Shown piece after piece: positions 14,135 through 53,794 of a DNA stretch of 64,000 nucleotides. The notes beneath the pieces are model-generated. The model searched no databases. It was not told where the DNA came from and worked only from the letters and a program-made list of their open reading frames with translations. Within the stretch, counting starts at the first letter, position 1. Every line of letters begins with the position of its first letter. Both the position numbers and the translations under genes were made by a program. The stretch lies in the sequence record PQ390715.1; one strand, 5' to 3'.

Positions 14135-14170
14135 AAAAAAGGAGAGCATAATGCTCTCCTTTTCTTTTTT
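14135..14170. terminator. Bidirectional intrinsic terminator
   Basis: AAAAAAGGAGAGC-ATAAT-GCTCTCCTTTT between convergent genes. Confidence 0.9.
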
Positions 14171-16458
14171 TATACTAGTGCTTTATCTACAGCTTTGGTA
14201 CGTTTCGGCTTAATACCGATTTTACCATCAATAACATCAAATGTAATGTTACCACCATTCACAAGTGAACCACACAACATTTCTTTAGCTAGTGGCACAC
14301 GAATGTTTTGTTCAATGGTACGTTTCATTGGACGTGCACCCATACCAACTTTTACCCCATTTTTCGCAAGCCATTCACGTGCAGCTTTTGTCAATGTAAC
14401 TTTAACATTACGGTCTTTGACTTGTTCATTCAAACCACCCATGAACTTATCAATGATGCTGTCAATAGCTTCACTGCTTAGGTCTTTAAACGTAACGATA
14501 CTATCAATACGGTTAATAAACTCTGGTGGCAAGAATGCTTTAATTGCCTTGTCCTGTGCAGTGTCACTACCGCTCATACCAATGCTACGCTTTGTTGAAT
14601 CAGCCGCACCAAGGTTTGTAGTCATAATAACAGTTACGTTATTAAAATATACAGTTTTACCTTGAGAACCAGTCAGACGACCTTCATCCAAAACCTGTAG
14701 GAAGGTTAGTAGTACTTTACGATCTGCTTTTTCAATTTCATCAAGTAACAGTACTGCATTAGGGAACTGCTCAATTTTATCCAACAGTAAACCGTTACCA
14801 GAATCATGACCAACATAACCTGGAGGTGAACCAATTAGTTTAGAAACAGTATGTTCTTGAGAAAATTCTGACATATCAAAGCGAATGAGTTCCGCACCAG
14901 TTGCGTCTGCTAATGCTTTGGTAATTTCTGTTTTACCAGTACCAGATGGTCCAACAAACATAAATGCACCCTGAACACTAGATTTGTCACGCAGTCCTGC
15001 ACGAGCTACCATCACGTTATCAACTAATTTTTGAATAGCTTCCTCTTGACCGTATACACGTGAGCGTAGTGCATCTGGTAGATTACGCATACGATCACTT
15101 TCAGTACATGCAACCACGTTGATATCCAAATTGGCAATACCAGCAACAACTTCTTGAATCAAATTGGCAGTAATAAGCTTACTATTGTTGTCACGTGAAC
15201 GAACTTTAGCCGCAGCAGCATCCATTAGATCAATTGCTTTATCTGGGAAGTGCTTATTCTTCAGGAATTTATCACTGAGAGAAATTACAGCATCCATTGC
15301 ATCAGATGTGAACTCAACATTATGGAATTTTTCATACGTTGGTTTCAAACCATTAACAATTGCACGAGTTTCATCAATTGTCGGCTCAACTACGTCAATT
15401 TTCATAAAACGACGAGTTAATGCACTATCTTTCTCGATATTTTTACGATATTCATCATATGTTGTTGCACCAATTACACGAATCTCACCACGTGAAAGTG
15501 CTGGCTTAAGCATATTGCTCATGTCCATAGAACCATTACTTGCGGAACCAGCCCCAACCATAATATGAATTTCATCAATGAAAACAATAGTATTTTCACG
15601 TTTCTTTAGTTCTTTTAGCAAATTGTCGATGCGTTCTTCAAATTCACCACGATACTTAGTACCAGCAGTCAATGCACCAACATTTAGTGAAAGAATTTCA
15701 ACGTCTTTCAGGTGTTCAGGTACGTTACCATCAGCAATAGCTTGTGCAAGCCCGTCGATGATTTGTGTTTTACCTACACCAGCTTCACCAGTGAGAATAG
15801 CATTCTTTTTGGTTTTGCGAGCAAGAGTCTCAATCAATGCAGACAATTCTTTCTGGCGACCAATCATAGGATCTAGTTTGCCTTCTTTTGCAAGAGCAGT
15901 TAGATTCGTTGTATAGTCTTCCAAACCTTTTTGTTTAGATGATTGCTGCTGTTGGGCCACTTTTTTATCTCCAATCGGTTCGTCATTAATACTTTGTAAG
16001 TTGATACCCTTATCAAGTGACTCAACGTGTTTCTGTAATGCACGTGCAGCTTCAGTACAGCTAACACCTTCTTCTTTTAACGCAGCTTCTAGTGCTGTGT
16101 TAGGGAAAGACAGACATTCGAATAGAACAAAATATGCATCAATCGAAAAATCATCACTTTTTAGTTGTTCAATAACTGATTTTTTAGAAAGCTCATGTAC
16201 AACGCGATTCACTAGAAGTGAAGTTCGATTCGCGTCTTCATCTTTAACACTTTTTGGTGCATGTGGAACTGTTGTATTTTTAAGATAGTTCATCAGGCGG
16301 TTGTGCAGTTTGTCTGCATCAATGTTCATATCTTCAAATACGTTCTTGATGCTATCAATAGTCAGTACTGTGGCACTTACGTGGTCAATAGTCAAGAATG
16401 TATGACCTAGAGATGTTGCCAGTTCGTCGCTTTTTTTGAACAATTGAGTAAGATTCAT
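14170..16458 (-). CDS. clpA: ClpA-like Hsp100 ATPase (Clp protease ATP-binding subunit)
   Basis: Clp-N domain, two AAA+ modules ([14 protein letters not shown] and [15 protein letters not shown]), pore loops KYRG and GYVG, no ClpB middle domain; start at 16458 follows GGAG. Confidence 0.9.
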
Positions 16459-16568: not shown

Positions 16569-18062
16569 ATGACATATAGAATGTGGAAAAAAGGTAGAAC
16601 CAATGATTACAAGTTCATTGATTCTGCCATTGCTGAACAATACAACATTGGTGGAGTTGACATGTGGCTTTATGCATATGTCGGTCCAAAACAAGTTGCT
16701 GACAACACTGACTTATCCTATGGAGGTGATTATACATCTTCAGGATCAGTTGTGTCAAGTATTGGCGATTTAATTTTTGGTGACACACCAAACAGAAACT
16801 ACAACCTTGAAGCTATCACACTTAGTTGTGTCTATCAAGTTCAAGAAGCAACTCCAGACTTGAAAATCCCAGGATTGTTCTTTAATTTCAACACTATGGA
16901 CATCACAATCCATTATAATACAATGATGCAGCGTTTAGGTAGAAAAATCATGCCAGGGGATGTGATAGAACTACCAAATTTACGTGATTTTGATGTATTG
17001 GGTAAAGATACAGGTCTAAACCGCTTCTATGTCGTCCAAGATGCATTTCGTACATCTGAGGGATACTCGGTTACGTGGCAACATCACATTTATAAACTTA
17101 GAGTTAAACCGCTAACCGACTCACCTGAGTACTCCGATTTACTCGGTAACAATAATTATCCTGATAATCCAGATGACCCTAATAATGGTAATGGAAATAC
17201 CGATGATGGTTCGTCGGAAAACAGTAACTATGGCAATGAAATGGATATCATGAACCGTATCATCATGCAAGCTGATGATGAAGTACCCTATATTCATTAT
17301 ACAAATGAACATTTGTATGATGATCGACCTGATACAGTAGATTTATCAAAATATATGCTTAACGGTTATGATTTTCCAGAAGAACCTGCCGATGGAATGT
17401 ATTTTTTGAAAAAAACATACCCAGTACTCAAAGAGTTTGTTAATGATACATGGATTTCTGTGGAAGTCAAGCGTGGAACCATCTTTCCCAGAAAACCAAT
17501 GGATGGTGACTTCTTCTTTAAAGAAAATGACGCAGATGTGACAGGTTATACGTTGTATCAATATGATAAAAGTGCTAAAAAATGGTTAAATTGTGATGTA
17601 GAATATACTACCAGTGATGTTCCACCAGAAGATGTGGAAGATTTTTGTATTTTTTATAAAGAACCACACATTTATCAGTATAATGATGACAAGTGGGGGG
17701 AACCAAAGGTAACTTATGTCAATGAACCATTCACGTCCAATTGTGTATATGGTAATATTGATTCGCAACAAGATTATCGTCCTAAAATTCCACCAGCACG
17801 AGGTACAGTCCCTGAAGGAAATATGTTCCCAACTGATGCAGTAGATGGTGACTATTTCTATCGCACCGATTATACTCCAGTTACGTTATGGGAATTCAAT
17901 GCAACTAAGAATTCATGGGTTATTTTTGATTATGGTGGAAGAAAACCGTGGGAAGGTGCAGACTTAGCACTTACACAGTTTGTAAATAGTGATAACAAAG
18001 TTCCATTACATGACGCAGTTAAACCTAATACTGTTTATCGCATACATAAGGACACAGAATGA
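16569..18062 (+). CDS. gp14: Neck/head-closure protein, T4 gp14-like, with long C-terminal extension
   Basis: N-half D..I.EQY.IGGVD...Y and KIMPGDVIELP are gp14-like; the C-half has FP..P.DG.YF repeats. Confidence 0.65.
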   Translation: MTYRMWKKGRTNDYKFIDSAIAEQYNIGGVDMWLYAYVGPKQVADNTDLSYGGDYTSSGSVVSSIGDLIFGDTPNRNYNLEAITLSCVYQVQEATPDLKIPGLFFNFNTMDITIHYNTMMQRLGRKIMPGDVIELPNLRDFDVLGKDTGLNRFYVVQDAFRTSEGYSVTWQHHIYKLRVKPLTDSPEYSDLLGNNNYPDNPDDPNNGNGNTDDGSSENSNYGNEMDIMNRIIMQADDEVPYIHYTNEHLYDDRPDTVDLSKYMLNGYDFPEEPADGMYFLKKTYPVLKEFVNDTWISVEVKRGTIFPRKPMDGDFFFKENDADVTGYTLYQYDKSAKKWLNCDVEYTTSDVPPEDVEDFCIFYKEPHIYQYNDDKWGEPKVTYVNEPFTSNCVYGNIDSQQDYRPKIPPARGTVPEGNMFPTDAVDGDYFYRTDYTPVTLWEFNATKNSWVIFDYGGRKPWEGADLALTQFVNSDNKVPLHDAVKPNTVYRIHKDTE

Positions 18063-35965: not shown

Positions 35966-36558
35966 TATTCTTCCTTGAAAAATGTAATAAAATGTTCCAT
36001 ATGTTTTTCGGTGGCATTGCGTGAACCAATACCAGTCCAGTTACCATGTGGTGCTGGAACGACGAATGTTTGTGTGAACTCTTTCAGTACTGTATCGAAA
36101 TAAAATACTGAACGTGAATTCATATCATAACAATAAATTTCAGGATTTTCAACTGAATCCATATACATCTGTACTGCCCATGCAGTACCACCACTTACCT
36201 TAGTTGGTGATGTGATATTTGCAATACAATATATTCTTTCTGTATTAAGTATCTGATAACTATTCCTTGCAAGTAAGTTGTAAACATAAGAACCAGGTTT
36301 TGGTACTTTTCGCTGCAACGAGTAACATGCAATGTTTAGTTGATTTAATATAGAAATATCAGATAGAATATTGGATGGTATTTCTAATATAGTACTTTCA
36401 TCTACACTATGCTCATGACCTTTGAATGAAAAATTAATAACTTCAAATCCATTATTTTTTGCATAGATAGAAAAAAGGCGGTCAGCACCTGCTGCCCCGC
36501 CACTAAAACATACATTAGATAAACCTTTAATTGCTTCATCTAATTCATTCTTTTTCAT
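35965..36558 (-). CDS. SLOG-superfamily (DprA/YspA/LOG-like) Rossmann protein
   Basis: FSGGAAGAD, ARNSYQI, SGGTAWAV and TGIGSR motifs; its stop overlaps the thyA start. Confidence 0.6.
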   Translation of the reverse strand: MKKNELDEAIKGLSNVCFSGGAAGADRLFSIYAKNNGFEVINFSFKGHEHSVDESTILEIPSNILSDISILNQLNIACYSLQRKVPKPGSYVYNLLARNSYQILNTERIYCIANITSPTKVSGGTAWAVQMYMDSVENPEIYCYDMNSRSVFYFDTVLKEFTQTFVVPAPHGNWTGIGSRNATEKHMEHFITFFKEE

Positions 36559-36561
36559 ATT

Positions 36562-37218
36562 TTATTTTGCTTTACGTTCTGCAAATAGTTGTTTTACTTT
36601 CTCAATAGCTTTAGTCTGTGAAATACCTTCTGGAATTTCTAGATAAATTGTTTTACTATCTTTCGGTTGTTCAACAACTTGTGTTTGCGGACGCAAGCTT
36701 GGCTCTAAATTGTATGCACGTTCATAATGTTCTTTAGCCAGTTTTTCATATTTTTGTGCATCAGTGAGAAGTTGTTCTACAATAGTAGCTTCTTCTACTT
36801 TAGTGTCCGCTTCTTGTGGATTGAATGGGTTAAAGTCTTTTACTTTACCATCTTCTTGTACTTTCGCTTGATTTTCATCTAATGCTTTGTTTAGAACATC
36901 AAGAGAAATTTTATTATTACCACCAGTGTGCATATCAATGTCACAAGTACGAACGCGACGTAGATGCTGCATGTTGTGTAGAACATCTAGCATTTTGCGT
37001 CCATCGAGATAACCAATTTTATGCATTACTTCCCACAAATCAATATTAGATTGACCATGACCCATAACAATATCAGTTACTGCGTGTACATATGCTTCTG
37101 GTAGTGAATCACGATAAACGATAAGGCAGTGTTCAGGATCATCTGGTAGTGAACGCCAAACAACAAAAACACGAGAACCTGTATTACGCATTACACCAAC
37201 ATGACGAATAGCTGCCAT
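36562..37218 (-). CDS. Conserved hypothetical phage protein
   Basis: 218-aa ORF in the early operon with SD GGAG. Confidence 0.7.
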   Translation of the reverse strand: MAAIRHVGVMRNTGSRVFVVWRSLPDDPEHCLIVYRDSLPEAYVHAVTDIVMGHGQSNIDLWEVMHKIGYLDGRKMLDVLHNMQHLRRVRTCDIDMHTGGNNKISLDVLNKALDENQAKVQEDGKVKDFNPFNPQEADTKVEEATIVEQLLTDAQKYEKLAKEHYERAYNLEPSLRPQTQVVEQPKDSKTIYLEIPEGISQTKAIEKVKQLFAERKAK

Positions 37219-48126: not shown

Positions 48127-48813
48127 TTAATTTTCGTAGAAGTTACTATCTGGTAGAGTAGTACTACTAATATTAGTTTGTGCACCAGAAATAGAGGTAG
48201 CAGTTGATGGATTACCGAAGCCACTAACTTCATCACCGAACGCTTCGCCATTTGGACCCAATTTAGCACAACCATCTGGTTGAACAGTCATTGAAATAAC
48301 TTGTGCTTCACTTGAGGAATAATCCCAATCACCAAAGTTACTGGATTCAATAAAGCAACCTTGACATACCCAAGTACTCAATGTTCCTTCAAACAAGTTT
48401 GTTGTATTTTCACTATTAGAACCATCAAGCTCTTGAATCCACATTTCAAATTTAAATTGTGAATCTGTCATGCGAGATTCTTGACTGTAGTAGTTAAATT
48501 CTTTACGCATTTGGTTGTATAGTGCTTTAGCAGAAGCATTACCTACAGAGTCACGGAAAGCAACATCAATTGTATCCCAAGTGTATTTCCCTTTGTAGTG
48601 TGCAGAACTGTTGTAACTATGAACAGTGACGTTTTCATGTGATACAGATACTGCCCCAACTGTATTGGTGTCTAGTGTAATCATATTACCATCATCATTA
48701 GTACCAAAACCAAAGAAAATAACACGAAATTTGTATTTTGCTTTTGGTTGTTTCATAGAGATACGACCACCGCCAGCGAGCGGTACGCCATATCGATCAA
48801 GCATTGTAGCCAT
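48127..48813 (-). CDS. gp19: Major tail tube protein, T4 gp19-like
   Basis: KYKFRV, GKYTWDTIDV.FRD and W.CQGCF......G..DY motifs; downstream of the sheath with its own TAAATA at 48849-48854. Confidence 0.8.
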   Translation of the reverse strand: MATMLDRYGVPLAGGGRISMKQPKAKYKFRVIFFGFGTNDDGNMITLDTNTVGAVSVSHENVTVHSYNSSAHYKGKYTWDTIDVAFRDSVGNASAKALYNQMRKEFNYYSQESRMTDSQFKFEMWIQELDGSNSENTTNLFEGTLSTWVCQGCFIESSNFGDWDYSSSEAQVISMTVQPDGCAKLGPNGEAFGDEVSGFGNPSTATSISGAQTNISSTTLPDSNFYEN

Positions 48814-48873
48814 TTATATTCTCCTATTATGGAATGACATCTTTATATTATTTATCTATCTGGAAGTATATTT

Positions 48874-49129
48874 TTAATTAACTAAAGTGTCATCAACAGG
48901 GAACCAATTAATATTAACACAATATAAGTATCTTTTTCGTTTAGTGTGGTCAATATAGTTTACTGATATAGACCATTTTCCATTTGTGTATACTTCGTAT
49001 TTTTCAATTATACCGACAATCTTCCAAATTTTTTAAAAATATATTTAGTATGTGTACTGATTCCAACTGAGTTAAAACTATTTTACTGACATCTTGTATT
49101 GTTTTTTTTAGTATTTCTTCCATATCCAT
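48874..49129 (-). pseudogene. Small frameshifted ORF between sheath and tube genes
   Basis: AAGGA-ATG at 49129 (MDMEEILKKTIQD...) stops near 49004, while a +1 frame (KIWKIVGIIEKYEVY...TLVN*) continues across TTTTTAAAAAA. Confidence 0.3.
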
Positions 49130-49176: not shown

Positions 49177-49202
49177 AAAAAAGGGAACCTTTTGGTTCCC
49201 TT
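49177..49202 (-). terminator. Intrinsic terminator after the sheath gene
   Basis: AAGGGAACC-AAAA-GGTTCCCTT-TTTT on the minus strand. Confidence 0.85.
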
Positions 49203-49208
49203 AGTGTT

Positions 49209-51872
49209 TTATTGAGTTTTCTCGATACGGATTGGTACGTAAATGAAGTTAATACTCTTAGTTGGTTGAATTGCAATATCCATCCAAAGTTCATTACGGT
49301 CAATACGCTCTGCGGTGTTGTTACTTTCATCACAAACCACTGCGAAGTTATAAAGACCCTGTTGTTGAACAATTTCAGCCAAGAAGCTATTAACTACACC
49401 ACTAAATTCCTGACGAGTACTTGGAGTATTCAAACGGAATAGGAATGGTTCGGAAATAATTTCTAGTTGACGACGAATATAAACAACTAAACGAGCAACG
49501 TTAACACGACTTAGTGCAGAAGTTTGATTAGCAGATAGAGTTTTATCTCCATAAACAAGCAATCCACGGTTAGGACGCATTGCAATTGGGTTAATGTTGT
49601 TAGTATACATAACGTCACGTTGACCTTGGTTGTATACTACTGGTTGATATTCACCTTCGCTGTTGATAAAACCAGTACTTGCAGCGTTTGTTACAACACC
49701 ACGAGTTGTACCAGCAGGTGGATACCATACATAACTAACACTATCACTGTATGCATATGTACGCATTGCAATAGTACTACCAGGAACTGCAACTTCTTCA
49801 CCATCAACGTTAGTACTTAGACACCAACCCATATACTGAGCAGCATAATCATAAGCAGTTGTACGACCAACTGAACCGTTGCTTGGTGCATTGTTAGCAT
49901 TAGTAGCCCATTGTTGTACAGCACTACCGTTTCCGGTTGGATTCAAACGTGCTGGAACGTCAGTAACAATAAATGCAGTTTCTTTACGATCAGTGTTTAA
50001 AGTTACACATTCATCAAGTGTTTCAACGTAACCAGGTACACAAATTAGGTTAAAATCAATAAATTCAGAACGAATGTCATCATTACCAATAATAACAGCA
50101 GCTAGTGCTTCAACTACTAGTTGACGTTGTGCAGCACGACCAAATAGGCCAGCACCATCAAGACTTACACCACTAACAACTTCCCATTGACCATTAACCA
50201 TTTTCTTAACAACACCTTCAGTGTTACCTAGGTCAACTGCAAGCATACCATTTTGATACAATGCCGCAGCAGGAACTTGGCTTGGGAAATTAAAGTCTTG
50301 GAAAATCATACCATTTAGTGTACTTTGATCAGTACTGTCAAGTTTAACCCATTCACCATCAACGTTACGATAGAAATCATAACCATCAATGCCTTGAGAC
50401 AAAGGACAAACCCAAATTAAACGGTCAGCCGCTGGTTCATCAACTTGTACATATTTGTTTTCTTCTTGTACTAGATCCCATTGATCATTAGCAACATCAG
50501 CAACATACATAGTTACAGTTAGATTATCGGAGTTCCCGAAATCATACCAGAGAGTTCCTTCTTTTGCTACACTACGTGGTACTGAATAACTAACACGGAA
50601 GTTATTAACGTTAATTAGAGAGTAGTTGTTACTATCTACAGTTAGTTTTTGTAGTTCAGGTTCAGCAAAAATATCATCACCACTTTGTGTGATTTTGAAA
50701 CTGTAACCTTTTGTATTGGAAACAACTAAACCACCATTAGTTTCACGTTTAAATTTAAAACCATCGTTAATAATTTCAGCATTTGCATTTAGATTATTGA
50801 TGATAGTTTGGGTATTAATAACACCGCCTTGTGGAACTGCTAGTACTTTAACTGATTTATTCAAATAAACAAAAGTCATATAACTATCAGCACCTGCTTG
50901 TTCAATAATAGTTTCACCAAGTGGCAAAGCAGGAGCACTAATTGTTGTTAGTTTTGCACTTTGAATATAGAAAGAGAAACTCTTACTATCTTCATCAAAA
51001 CGAGATGCGATATAACTATTGTTTAGTACACCACTTTTCGCTTCAATTTCTTGGAATGAATTACCAGTATATGCTGGTACAATATTCCAAACTTGAGTTA
51101 GGGATGCATAACGTTTAATAACAAAACGAGTACCAAAATAGTTTGAACCATTTTGGGTGTAACCATCACGAATCCAAATGTTACCTTTTTCTACAGTTGA
51201 GCCAACTGGAACTTTGTTAATTGGTGATAGATAAGTTTCCATTTGCACTAGCCCAGAAGCAGAACGTTTATACATTAGCATCTGACCATTGCTTGGTTTG
51301 TAACGTAGAACTAAATCATCAACATTTAAACCTACTAGACTTACATCTTCAACTTCTTCAGCACTTACAATAGTTACTGGCTTAAGTTGCCAATCATAAA
51401 AACTGCTTGGACTATCTTTCTTCGCTACATACGCTTCTACTTGTGATTGTGCGGTATCAAACCACAAAGTACCATTGGATACTGGGCCAGTTGGTGCTTC
51501 AGCACTTGGTGCTAGTTGTGCTAGATCGATATCAGCACGAATTACATATGCACGGTTAGTAATGCCTAGATAAGAATATACTGCATGTAGGCCATATTCG
51601 TTTAGTTCATCACCTTGAACAACAGAACCGTTATTCATTTGAAAAATTGGTGTACCATAGGTATCAAGTGAGCTTTTTTGTGATGTTAGAAGCTGTAGTT
51701 TTCCAGCGTTTGCTTTAGTAGTTCCCGCAGCTATTGCACTGCTTCCTGGGACAAGTTTGTCTTCAGCAGTAGCGATTACAAATAGTGGTACAGTGCCAGG
51801 AGCAGCAGCGGTACTCATACTTTCATCAGTTACTGAAATGGAAACGCCAGGTGAGAGTAGATCTCCTGCCAT
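49209..51872 (-). CDS. gp18: Tail sheath protein, T4 gp18-like
   Basis: LLSPGVSISVTDES, WYPPAG..RG, LY..NINPI, VYGDKT, RVNVARL and DESNNT.ERIDRNEL..DIAIQPTKSINFI. Confidence 0.95.
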   Translation of the reverse strand: MAGDLLSPGVSISVTDESMSTAAAPGTVPLFVIATAEDKLVPGSSAIAAGTTKANAGKLQLLTSQKSSLDTYGTPIFQMNNGSVVQGDELNEYGLHAVYSYLGITNRAYVIRADIDLAQLAPSAEAPTGPVSNGTLWFDTAQSQVEAYVAKKDSPSSFYDWQLKPVTIVSAEEVEDVSLVGLNVDDLVLRYKPSNGQMLMYKRSASGLVQMETYLSPINKVPVGSTVEKGNIWIRDGYTQNGSNYFGTRFVIKRYASLTQVWNIVPAYTGNSFQEIEAKSGVLNNSYIASRFDEDSKSFSFYIQSAKLTTISAPALPLGETIIEQAGADSYMTFVYLNKSVKVLAVPQGGVINTQTIINNLNANAEIINDGFKFKRETNGGLVVSNTKGYSFKITQSGDDIFAEPELQKLTVDSNNYSLINVNNFRVSYSVPRSVAKEGTLWYDFGNSDNLTVTMYVADVANDQWDLVQEENKYVQVDEPAADRLIWVCPLSQGIDGYDFYRNVDGEWVKLDSTDQSTLNGMIFQDFNFPSQVPAAALYQNGMLAVDLGNTEGVVKKMVNGQWEVVSGVSLDGAGLFGRAAQRQLVVEALAAVIIGNDDIRSEFIDFNLICVPGYVETLDECVTLNTDRKETAFIVTDVPARLNPTGNGSAVQQWATNANNAPSNGSVGRTTAYDYAAQYMGWCLSTNVDGEEVAVPGSTIAMRTYAYSDSVSYVWYPPAGTTRGVVTNAASTGFINSEGEYQPVVYNQGQRDVMYTNNINPIAMRPNRGLLVYGDKTLSANQTSALSRVNVARLVVYIRRQLEIISEPFLFRLNTPSTRQEFSGVVNSFLAEIVQQQGLYNFAVVCDESNNTAERIDRNELWMDIAIQPTKSINFIYVPIRIEKTQ

Positions 51873-51942
51873 ATTAAATCCTCCAAAAATAATTGGTTAT
51901 TCGAAATATATTCGTATAGTCTTATTTATTGAAGGATTTAAT
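51873..51942 (-). promoter_or_regulatory. RBS-sequestering hairpin enclosing a late promoter (gp18)
   Basis: mRNA ATTAAATCCTTC pairs with GGAGGATTTAAT-ATG (12 bp, one G-U); TAAATA at 51923-51928. Confidence 0.7.
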
Positions 51943-51966
51943 TGTCCAGTCCTTATTGTTTATAAT

Positions 51967-52593
51967 TTATGTATTAGAATAAATAATGTCCATTGCTTTT
52001 TTATGTAAATCATCAATAGTACTGTTATTCTGTACAATTATATCAGGATTGTTTATGCCAATCCAAGCCCACTCAGATTCGTGTACTGTTTCTAGTTCAA
52101 CTGGTTTAATATTAATATCCCCTTTATTATAAGAGGCCGCCAAACCATACCAATGTGGTAGAACACGTTGAACTTCAATAATAGTCCCATTTTGCGATCT
52201 AATCATTTTTAATTCATTTGGAAAACGGCAATCAGTGATGATGATATTTCCATCTATTTCTTGCATTGATTTTTCTAAACTGAATACCCAAATATCATTA
52301 TGAAAATACTTACGCAAAATATTAGTACCATAATTCTGCAATACCCATCGAGGGGATACATCACTACGACCTAACTTATCACACCAGTACTGGTCCGGTT
52401 CTTCACGAATCTTACGACTTTCCTTAGTTGAACCTTCAAGCATTTCACGATCCCATCCAAAAATAGCAGCAACGGAATCTTTAAGATTAGTTGCAAATGA
52501 CATTCTGGTGTAACCATTATTAATAAAAGTTTCTCCAAAAGTATCTTTACCACTTCCAATAGTACCGTTAATTGCAATTATTTGTCTTTCCAT
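51967..52593 (-). CDS. gp1: Deoxynucleoside monophosphate kinase, T4 gp1-like
   Basis: IIAINGTIGSGKDT, SFA..LK, R..LQ..GT, DCRFPNE and HESE motifs. Confidence 0.9.
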   Translation of the reverse strand: MERQIIAINGTIGSGKDTFGETFINNGYTRMSFATNLKDSVAAIFGWDREMLEGSTKESRKIREEPDQYWCDKLGRSDVSPRWVLQNYGTNILRKYFHNDIWVFSLEKSMQEIDGNIIITDCRFPNELKMIRSQNGTIIEVQRVLPHWYGLAASYNKGDINIKPVELETVHESEWAWIGINNPDIIVQNNSTIDDLHKKAMDIIYSNT

Positions 52594-52611: not shown

Positions 52612-52881
52612 TTATATAAGTACTACTAAATCCTTTCCTACTAAACATTCAAGGAATTGAACTATAAACTCGCTCCCATAATATATAGTAACATAAGTGA
52701 TGTAGAATGTTTCTCCATTATCATCACGACATATACTCGCCCACGCGTTTATTCGATCTCTACCGAAAACATCAACGATTGATTCTTTTAAAAATTTCCA
52801 GAATTTTTCTGTTGACTCATAATCTAATGTAGGTGCACCACAACTATATTTGTTATACATTGCATTTATGTTATTATTCAT
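52612..52881 (-). CDS. Hypothetical protein
   Basis: 89 aa behind an extended -10 TGTGATATAAT at 52909-52919. Confidence 0.6.
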   Translation of the reverse strand: MNNNINAMYNKYSCGAPTLDYESTEKFWKFLKESIVDVFGRDRINAWASICRDDNGETFYITYVTIYYGSEFIVQFLECLVGKDLVVLI

Positions 52882-52926
52882 GACAAGTTCCTTTAGATTA
52901 ATAGTATCATTATATCACATAATGTG

Positions 52927-52954
52927 AAAAAGACTCCATATAGGAGTCTTTTTT
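52927..52954. terminator. Intrinsic terminator after gp13
   Basis: AAAAAGACTCC-ATATA-GGAGTCTTTTT. Confidence 0.85.
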
Positions 52955-52957
52955 AAT

Positions 52958-53749
52958 TTAACCAATAATCATACCTAGTGGTTCAGCACCATCTTGATAA
53001 CGTTTCAAACGCTCTTTAAGCTGTTCCTGAAGTTGTAATCCTTCATTACGTAATGTATCACCATCCATAGAAAACGTTCCCTGTGGACCTGGAAGAGAAG
53101 CAAATTTGGCACGGTTACGACCCAACATAATCATGGCTTCAGACAATGCCCAATCACGTAGCCAAGGATAACTTTGCTGTCTTTGAAACAACAATGGTTC
53201 AGGAATATTATGATATACGTGTAATAGTACTTCTTCAGTACCGCGAATATCACGATCTATAATTAATTTTTTGGTCATTGGGTTAAATTGAAATATAATA
53301 TCACGACCAAACATACGACCTACCAGTTCTTGGAACTGAAAACTAAAATCATATGTAGTTAGATCATATCCACCTGCATTTCGTGCTGAAGTCAATAAGT
53401 AAGTGTTGGTGAATGCTAGAGAAAACGGATCTACTGAGTTCCCACTACCAGAACTTAAGTAACCATTACCATAACGATAAATCTTTTTAACAATTTCAAC
53501 TTCAGTTGGTAGCATATATACAGATTGTGAATCATAAAATTTCATATTTAAAAATGCTTCTTCTTTAGAAGCAGAACTCCACGCTCTGTAATTCGATACC
53601 GCATTATCAATTGCAATTTCTAATTGACCATCAGTAATTTCTACCTCAACGGCCCCAGCACCCAACATTTGAGTGATAACATCTTTCAGTTTTTCACGAT
53701 GGTCAAAGTTAGGAGCATCAGGGTTTCCACCCATATAATCGTAAGACAT
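52958..53749 (-). CDS. gp13: Neck protein, T4 gp13-like
   Basis: LK..I..MLGA..VEVEITD.QL..AID.A and WLRDWAL...M..LG..RAKFA.LPGPQG....DGD.L; start at 53749 follows GAGGT. Confidence 0.9.
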   Translation of the reverse strand: MSYDYMGGNPDAPNFDHREKLKDVITQMLGAGAVEVEITDGQLEIAIDNAVSNYRAWSSASKEEAFLNMKFYDSQSVYMLPTEVEIVKKIYRYGNGYLSSGSGNSVDPFSLAFTNTYLLTSARNAGGYDLTTYDFSFQFQELVGRMFGRDIIFQFNPMTKKLIIDRDIRGTEEVLLHVYHNIPEPLLFQRQQSYPWLRDWALSEAMIMLGRNRAKFASLPGPQGTFSMDGDTLRNEGLQLQEQLKERLKRYQDGAEPLGMIIG

Positions 53750-53754
53750 AAAAA

Positions 53755-53794
53755 AGCACCTCATTAATGTTTATATACATTATTTAGAGGTGCT
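53755..53794 (-). promoter_or_regulatory. RBS-sequestering hairpin enclosing a late promoter (gp13)
   Basis: mRNA AGCACCTC-TAAATA...-GAGGTGCT, then 5 nt to the ATG. Confidence 0.75.

Follow-up and report, generated by a model that had tools for sequence, protein, structure and literature searches.

A predicted promoter-gated hairpin over the ribosome-binding site of a jumbo phage tail sheath gene

Introduction

The closest described relatives of the element reported here are found in bacteriophage T4. In the leader of T4 gene e, a helix sequesters the Shine-Dalgarno (SD) sequence. The 5' strand of this helix is encoded at or upstream of the late promoter; the long early RNA is silent and the late RNA is translated (PMC3014915). 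The same design has been reported for I-TevII, I-TevIII, segB, Aeh1 mobE, soc, 25, 26 and gene 49 (PMC3014915, PMC2988022). Here, we describe a leader with this layout upstream of a tail sheath gene. The gene lies on the minus strand of a 64,000-nucleotide stretch of sequence record PQ390715.1, from Escherichia phage SHEFM2K. We refer to this whole stretch as the window, and coordinates are those of the window unless the record is named.

The known examples fall into different kinds of gene. I-TevI, and also I-TevII, I-TevIII, segB and Aeh1 mobE, have a hairpin at the ribosome-binding site (RBS) that forms on early or middle read-through RNA and that late RNA is unable to form (PMC2988022). 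These are selfish endonuclease genes inside host transcription units, and some are also autorepressed at the promoter. The T4 genes soc, 49, 25 and 26 are late or structural genes on long polycistronic RNA, and here too the RBS is sequestered (PMC2988022). A preliminary description of the window had cited T4 as precedent for such a design. This is borne out for gene e and I-TevI by PMC3014915, and for soc, e, 25, 26 and others by PMC2988022.

A late promoter motif has been proposed for relatives of SHEFM2K. Thus, Buttimer et al. used MEME to find the sequence ATAAATA before structural genes of phages CBB and GAP32 and proposed it as a late promoter (PMC5259590). This motif, 'Promoter 3', precedes the orthologous sheath gene of CBB, where Table S7 lists the site as Porf_204, a predicted late promoter (PMC5259590). 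The same paper makes no mention of an anti-SD sequence, hairpin or translational control at Porf_204. We found no description of the hairpin in the literature on CBB, RaK2, phAPEC6 and fEgEco12, and searches covering GAP32 and transcript mapping in the clade returned none either. The earlier statement that this design was undescribed for a jumbo phage sheath gene thus holds for the clade literature covered (CBB, RaK2, phAPEC6, fEgEco12).

Results

The sheath RBS is predicted to be sequestered by an exceptional hairpin

Judged by its sequence, the phage is an Asteriusvirus of the PBECO4/121Q type. The 2 kilobases (kb) around the hairpin (record positions 299000–301000) share 96–99.9% identity with PBECO4, phAPEC6 and 121Q, all of them Asteriusvirus jumbo myoviruses of ~350 kb. 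The genome sequence examined amounts to 134 kb and comprises the 64-kb window and positions 1–50000 (L052) and 228001–248000 (L053) of PQ390715.1. The tail sheath gene (49209–51872, minus strand) encodes 887 amino acids and starts with the codon at 51872–51870. Its product matches phrog_10581 (E 0) and phrog_23, and the orthologues in related phages are annotated as sheath. The sheath orthologue of phAPEC6 was detected in the virion, with 25 hexameric rings per tail, and the sheath is among the two most abundant virion proteins (PMC7247149).

The leader of this gene can fold back on its own RBS. On the minus strand, the segment ATTAAATCCTTC (51942–51931) pairs with GGAGGATTTAAT (51884–51873), and the ATG follows directly. 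The 3' arm contains the whole SD sequence (GGAGG, 51884–51880) and the whole spacer. The pairing comprises 11 Watson-Crick pairs and 1 G-U pair, a base-for-base match to the preliminary description. That description had called the structure a 12-base-pair (bp) hairpin; all 12 pairs are present, but the helix is in fact longer. The minimum-energy fold has 14 continuous pairs, a bulged U and 6 more pairs. Its 5' strand (51942–51922) consists of the anti-SD (51942–51931) followed by the promoter motif region (51930–51922). Its 3' strand (51892–51873) holds a U-rich tract, the SD and the SD–ATG spacer.

Such stability is not expected of RNA with this composition. The 76-nucleotide (nt) element folds with −21.0 kcal/mol, compared with −6.0 ± 2.4 kcal/mol for shuffled sequences (z −6.39), and none of 200 shuffles equalled it. 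In a 101-nt context the energy was −24.4 kcal/mol (z −6.0), again equalled by 0 of 200 dinucleotide shuffles. Among 59 gene starts in the window, the sheath SD is the most strongly paired, with a mean unpaired probability of 0.03; the runner-up has 0.12. It ranks second among all 178 starts in the 134 kb, a single lower value occurring among the 119 starts outside the window. The RBS-sequestering hairpin is thus real and statistically exceptional. We rejected the reading of the stem as a terminator: there is no U-run, the terminator scan has no match in 51873–51966, and an AUG and G-rich coding sequence come next. No curated RNA family in Rfam 15 matched positions 51600–52200 on either strand at E values up to 1.

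A predicted late promoter falls within the 5' strand of the hairpin

The sequence AATAAATA (51923–51930, minus strand) is a predicted late promoter element that matches the T4 late promoter at 7 of 8 positions (PMC5259590, PMC3014915). It includes ATAAATA, the motif proposed for CBB and GAP32, and in the minimum-energy fold it falls within the 5' strand of the hairpin. The TAAATA noted earlier starts at 51928, 2 nt past the 5' arm as had been stated.

Copies of ATAAATA are placed as promoters should be. The window has 11 copies, 8 of which are in the sense orientation 12–80 nt before an ATG, where chance placement would give 3.3%. In a 20-kb structural region (portal, baseplate), 6 of 10 copies have this placement. 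In a 50-kb block of small early-type genes, 1 of 4 does. The exact T4-type late 8-mer has a more extreme distribution. It is absent from the 64-kb window, where 10.6 ± 3.1 copies are expected, and from the 50-kb early-type block. The 134 kb contain 5 copies, all in the 20-kb structural region, each in the sense orientation just before a gene; the genes include those for the baseplate hub, endonuclease VII and structural proteins. The distribution suggests a functional signal with strong avoidance outside promoters. The first 7 bases of the T4-type 8-mer occur 27 times in the window, yet the full 8-mer has no copy there. One relative (L031) has the exact 8-mer at the sheath site. These candidate sites resemble gp55-dependent promoters, which have a single −10-like 8-mer before late genes and no −35 element.

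The sequence TATA (51915–51918, minus strand) lies 5 to 8 nt past the motif. Its four bases are invariant in 22 of 22 aligned sheath leaders, and at about half of the other candidate late sites TATA is found 1–7 nt past ATAAATA. Because of this spacing and invariance, late transcription likely starts at 51918–51915, in agreement with the start near 51917 named in the preliminary description.

The genome also encodes a candidate factor for recognition of the motif. A gp55-family late sigma gene is located at PQ390715.1 240629–241468. Its product hits the families phrog_12791 ('sigma factor for late transcription', 3.4e-154) and phrog_234 ('late sigma transcription factor', 8.4e-18); it had no match in Pfam and none among PDB sequences. 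The gene adjoins SbcC/SbcD-like nuclease genes (PQ390715.1 237455–241468; L053:9455–13468), a neighbourhood that presumably recalls T4 genes 46, 47 and 55. In T4-type late transcription, coupling to replication is provided by the co-activator gp33 and the sliding clamp gp45, for which the published record is mixed. Homologues of gp33 and gp45 were reported to be lacking in CBB (PMC5259590), and gp33 orthologues were reported for 'group 2' jumbo phages (PMC7824862). From its placement and distribution, the nearby TATA, the sigma gene and the CBB listing, the motif before the sheath gene is predicted to be a late promoter.

Modelled leaders differ in SD accessibility according to their 5' end

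We compared folds of leaders that begin upstream of the hairpin with folds of leaders that begin near TATA. For long leaders, with 5' ends at 51945, 51969, 52072 or 52272, the unpaired probability was 0.00 at all five SD bases. Those with 5' ends at 51945 or 51969 folded with −29.4 kcal/mol. For short leaders, with 5' ends at 51915–51921, the probability of being unpaired was 0.6–1.0 at three of the five SD bases and the fold was −13.9 to −14.5 kcal/mol. The 48-nt late leader alone gave −5.5 kcal/mol (z −0.7). The difference extends to relatives. Across 21 of them, the modelled SD was unpaired with a mean probability of 0.02 (maximum 0.20) in long leaders and 0.47 in short leaders.

Folding also gives the predicted late leader a small stem-loop (51898–51918, minus strand) at its 5' end. 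This is the inner hairpin of the long form, and may stabilise the late mRNA. RaK2, EJP2, Hallingskeid and a further leader, L026 (L007, L010, L011, L026), have a stem at this end too, formed by other sequences; in L026 the loop region has been replaced and a 5-bp stem retained. Closer to the SD, the sequence CCAA (within 51885–51898, minus strand) stands 4–7 nt before the UUGG that leads the SD, and is kept in 21 of 21 RaK2-like leaders.

An upstream transcription unit runs towards the sheath gene

The gene immediately upstream encodes a deoxynucleoside monophosphate (dNMP) kinase (51967–52593, minus strand; phrog_139, E 5.6e-49), and has the same annotation in relatives. It is preceded by an 89-amino-acid open reading frame (ORF; 52612–52881, minus strand), the first gene of the kinase operon, which belongs to phrog_34967, a family without assigned function. 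Upstream of this ORF is a sigma70-type extended −10 element, TGATATAAT (52909–52917, minus strand), the predicted source of pre-late RNA. The TG-n-TATAAT form of the element is kept in the window, UE-S1, ph0011, BF17 and JNE01. Further upstream, a hairpin with a T-run resembling a terminator (52927–52948, minus strand) lies just 3' of the neck or head-tail adaptor gene (52958–53764, minus strand), and would end the upstream late unit. It is kept in Asteriusvirus, and an ARNold terminator is annotated at the equivalent place in phage G17. The order of terminator, extended −10, 89-amino-acid ORF and kinase gene is conserved in Asteriusvirus.

The kinase operon is probably early, judging from its promoter type and from the timing of T4 gene 1. 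No intrinsic terminator is predicted in the kinase–sheath spacer, and the ARNold annotation of the near-identical phage G17 has none at this place either. The scan and the G17 annotation thus agree with the earlier observation that the kinase operon runs on the sheath strand with no terminator behind it. An intrinsic terminator is predicted 3' of the sheath gene (49181–49202, minus strand), found by the scan and matched by an ARNold terminator in G17. The 5' arm of the hairpin starts 25 nt past the kinase stop codon; hence, a ribosome terminating on the kinase gene should not reach the arm.

The upstream region varies between relatives. In CBB, XbC2 and Yen9-04 (L008, L012, L013, ~40–80) the promoter before the small ORF has been swapped: an exact late 8-mer comes right after the neck stop codon and is followed by a hairpin. 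The Asteriusvirus counterpart of this region (window 52882–52957) contains the terminator and the sigma70-type extended −10. No small ORF is annotated between the neck and kinase genes of 7t3, EJP2 and Hallingskeid. In UE-S1, ph0011 and RaK2 (L002:1–45, L003:1–38, L007:1–372), the place of the neck gene, directly upstream of the kinase unit, is taken by a gene for a ~660-amino-acid protein with an endonuclease domain. The RaK2 record describes this protein as a possible homing endonuclease.

The helix and the promoter motif are conserved together in RaK2-like phages

The kinase-to-sheath gene order is found in 73 phage records, with hosts in Escherichia, Klebsiella, Salmonella, Erwinia, Yersinia, Pectobacterium, Cronobacter, Serratia and Xanthomonas. 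We compared spacers from 12 annotated genomes and from IMG/VR contigs, which gave 21 distinct RaK2-like leaders and some more distant ones. The RaK2-like set consists of Asteriusvirus, Alcyoneusvirus, Mimasvirus, Eneladusvirus, the 7t3 group and IMG/VR contigs. In these 21 relatives, kinase–sheath DNA identity falls to ~68%. In every one of them, a C-rich anti-SD is flush against ATAAATA and paired with the SD.

The common helix has 9 positions, to which 1–7 outer pairs are added according to lineage. Outer pairs were counted with the alignment anchored on the SD; spacer lengths differ and MAFFT misregisters the 3' arm past the third outer pair. RNAalifold returned the 9-position helix as the sole consensus structure. 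In register, 92.9% of cells form a pair, compared with 42–70% when partners are slid by 1–3 columns. The mean share of the commonest base is 0.57 upstream of the arm, 0.94 in the anti-SD, 0.99 in the promoter motif and 1.00 in the SD. As an internal control, the other two intergenic spacers at the locus are not conserved between genera, and there even the promoter type changes. The C-rich stretch precedes the motif at none of ~20 other candidate late sites. Hence, the anti-SD is not part of the promoter.

Base changes in the helix were also recorded. In two lineages, the anti-SD has a C to U change opposite G, which fits RNA pairing. In the outer stem, one pair that is A-U in Asteriusvirus is switched to U-A in the CBB, XbC2 and EJP2 lineages, and is mismatched in others, or the reverse. 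The preliminary description had proposed a search for compensatory changes in relatives. Changes of this kind do occur, but covariation is weak overall. On the sequences compared, the support for the helix is conservation and pairing compatibility, not covariation.

More distant phages have other arrangements. In L033 there is a 6-pair version of the helix. In L033 and L034 (1400–1500; sheath 43–45% identical) the sheath gene is the immediate neighbour of the neck gene, without an intervening kinase gene, and in L034 a 9-bp terminator-like hairpin stands just before the late-type motif, in the place of the anti-SD. A TTTACCCC-type box occurs 30–45 nt before the late-type motif of the sheath gene in PA5oct-like and related contigs (L043–L051, ~1380–1440). 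In one PA5oct-like sequence (L043), a stretch near the box pairs with the SD (z −3.4) and is a possible analogue. A scan of IMG/VR for the exact 14-mer of anti-SD plus motif was uninformative: of the 80 matches listed and read, 2 were sheath leaders and the others were unrelated.

Discussion

A probable promoter-gated translational lock

These observations point to a promoter-gated lock on translation of the tail sheath gene, and we think it probable that RNA from the gene's own promoter alone can be translated. RNA begun upstream of the spacer would carry the 5' strand (51942–51922). In this phage, such RNA would come mainly from the sigma70-type promoter of the 89-amino-acid ORF and dNMP kinase operon, by read-through. 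The 5' strand would pair with the U-tract, SD and spacer (51892–51873), so that 30S subunits could not bind and no sheath would be made from the long RNA. Later, the gp55-family sigma factor would direct RNA polymerase to AATAAATA, inside the DNA for the 5' strand. Transcription would start ~6 nt past the motif, in the TATA at 51918–51915, and the late RNA would lack the entire 5' strand. This RNA would have a small protective stem-loop at its 5' end and a largely free SD. Sheath would thus be made solely from its own late promoter.

Of the features that define the gene e/I-TevI class, the stable SD helix is found in the sequence of this locus, and the late promoter in its 5' strand and the read-through from an upstream promoter are predicted. 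That the sheath leader joins the T4 class of late-promoter-gated RBS hairpins is well supported by the sequence comparisons, and the mechanism would not be new. The predicted layout is that of T4 gene e, an SD helix with its 5' strand at a late promoter. The setting differs: a RaK2-like jumbo phage, a tail sheath gene, a promoter with a 7/8 match and a larger gp55-family sigma factor (279 amino acids). The gene e mechanism was shown by experiment, whereas the sheath case is a prediction. Unlike genes of the I-TevI group, the sheath gene is a core, highly expressed structural gene with no evident operator. The likeness to soc, 49, 25 and 26 is drawn from published descriptions of the design, and sequence kinship is not expected for such short elements.

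Several findings weigh against this account or limit it. The literature on the clade holds no measured transcript 5' ends, RNA structure or protein timing for any member. Covariation is weak: among 14 in-register pairs there is one double change, at a core pair in L033, which is the most distant sequence, and RNAalifold gives a covariation term of −0.09. In the core, the SD side is not free to vary, which accounts for this. Several lineages have mismatches in the outer stem, with only 1–3 extra pairs. Beyond the RaK2-like clade (sheath identity of 55% or less; L033–L051) the design is not kept, and z-scores are mostly unremarkable. In the model the short leader is about half open, since a weak 4-bp CCAA/UUGG helix occupies the first two G residues of the SD. 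Finally, the upstream RNA would not be purely early in every relative. The 7t3 kinase gene lies 10 nt after the neck gene, so upstream RNA there would be late too. A late-type motif stands before the small ORF in CBB, XbC2 and Yen9-04, where upstream RNA would again be late as well.

For this last reason, the gate is better described as one between the gene's own promoter and any upstream promoter than as one between early and late. The preliminary description had early RNA silent and late RNA active. The sequence parts for that design are in place, but its wording needs widening, given that upstream RNA would also be late in 7t3, CBB, XbC2 and Yen9-04. On late polycistronic RNA, too, the hairpin would keep the sheath cistron silent. 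Read-through transcripts with an untranslated sheath gene would, moreover, be exposed to Rho-dependent termination.

Other explanations of the hairpin

If the true late start were upstream of 51942, the hairpin would be part of the late message, where it would throttle or tune sheath translation or need an opening factor. The start site at TATA is a prediction, the modelled short leader is not fully open, and upstream of the arm there are a weak sigma70-like match (51992–51964) and, close to the kinase stop codon, a stretch resembling ATAAAT. On the other hand, a permanently closed RBS (unpaired 0.00) ill fits a highly abundant virion protein (PMC7247149). Furthermore, the region upstream of the arm is unconserved (0.57), compared with 0.99 for the motif inside the arm, which is the one listed for CBB. 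We therefore regard an upstream start as unlikely. Much the same can be said of a role in RNA processing or stability, as an RNase III-type site between messages or a protective 3' stem-loop of the kinase mRNA, with SD occlusion as a side effect. The helix is at the end of the kinase message, and the extended stem in the window has ~22 pairs with bulges, which is close to the length that RNase III requires. Yet the long stem is limited to part of Asteriusvirus, and what is conserved is 9 positions centred exactly on the SD. There is no U-run past the stem, and the position of the promoter motif inside it would be left unexplained. A processing or stability element is improbable on this evidence.

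The C-rich stretch might instead act as DNA. It is flush against the motif and is conserved mainly without covariation, as would suit a promoter element upstream of the motif, or a site for protein binding, that the sheath promoter alone has, with complementarity to the SD being incidental. However, the stretch is at none of the ~20 other candidate late sites, and in most relatives nine consecutive positions are complementary to the SD and its flanks. The tolerated C to U change opposite G fits RNA pairing and not a DNA site, and the outer stem has A-U to U-A switches. We give such an element a slim chance. Could the complementarity have arisen by chance in an AT-rich spacer? Pairing between the A-rich motif and a U-rich tract does occur in other leaders, where it is without clear significance (z −1.9 and −2.6). 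The sheath hairpin has a z of −6.4, with 0 of 200 shuffles as good, and the helix is present in 21 distinct relatives at DNA identities down to ~68%. The conservation data already contradict chance, which is scarcely credible as an explanation. The promoter-gated lock is the most probable of these readings.

Other leaders and wider meaning

Some other leaders of SHEFM2K resemble the sheath leader. The gene at 36208–36684 of PQ390715.1, an early-type gene of the paralogous family phrog 12674, has a leader hairpin whose 5' strand is a sigma70-type extended −10, paired with the bases just before the ATG (L052:36684–36760, minus strand). Its SD has an unpaired probability of 0.00 when the leader is long and 0.54 when it is short, an equally strong case. 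Within the window (48814–48915, minus strand), ATAAATA lies between the arms of a long imperfect hairpin over the SD of the structural gene 48127–48813. Here the values are 0.15 long and 0.65 short, and a terminator separates this gene from the sheath gene. This weaker case (gene start at 48813, minus strand) and the similar-looking leader of the gene starting at 16569 (plus strand) reach z of only −1.9 and −2.6, respectively. In the leader of 14170–16458 (minus strand), the partner of the SD is the divergent neighbour's SD in reverse complement, which looks incidental.

There may be a general rule in RaK2-like jumbo phages, namely that RBS hairpins contain promoters, of more than one class, within their 5' strands, each such gene being translated from its own promoter alone. 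We put this forward tentatively and consider it rather doubtful as it stands. If it were true, the hairpins would be translational insulators against heavy read-through in a terminator-poor genome, and the sheath lock would act against late polycistronic RNA as well as early RNA.

For the sheath gene itself, the lock would explain how untimely sheath synthesis is avoided although a nucleotide-metabolism gene lies between those for neck and sheath. When T4 sheath protein is made without baseplate and tube, it polymerises into polysheath. The sheath leader should be annotated as a conserved non-coding element in at least four genera, and it offers a concrete anchor for the late promoter and start site in the clade. 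More broadly, it would extend a regulatory design of T4 to a core structural gene, and to phages of ~350 kb that form a clade of their own and have been little studied.

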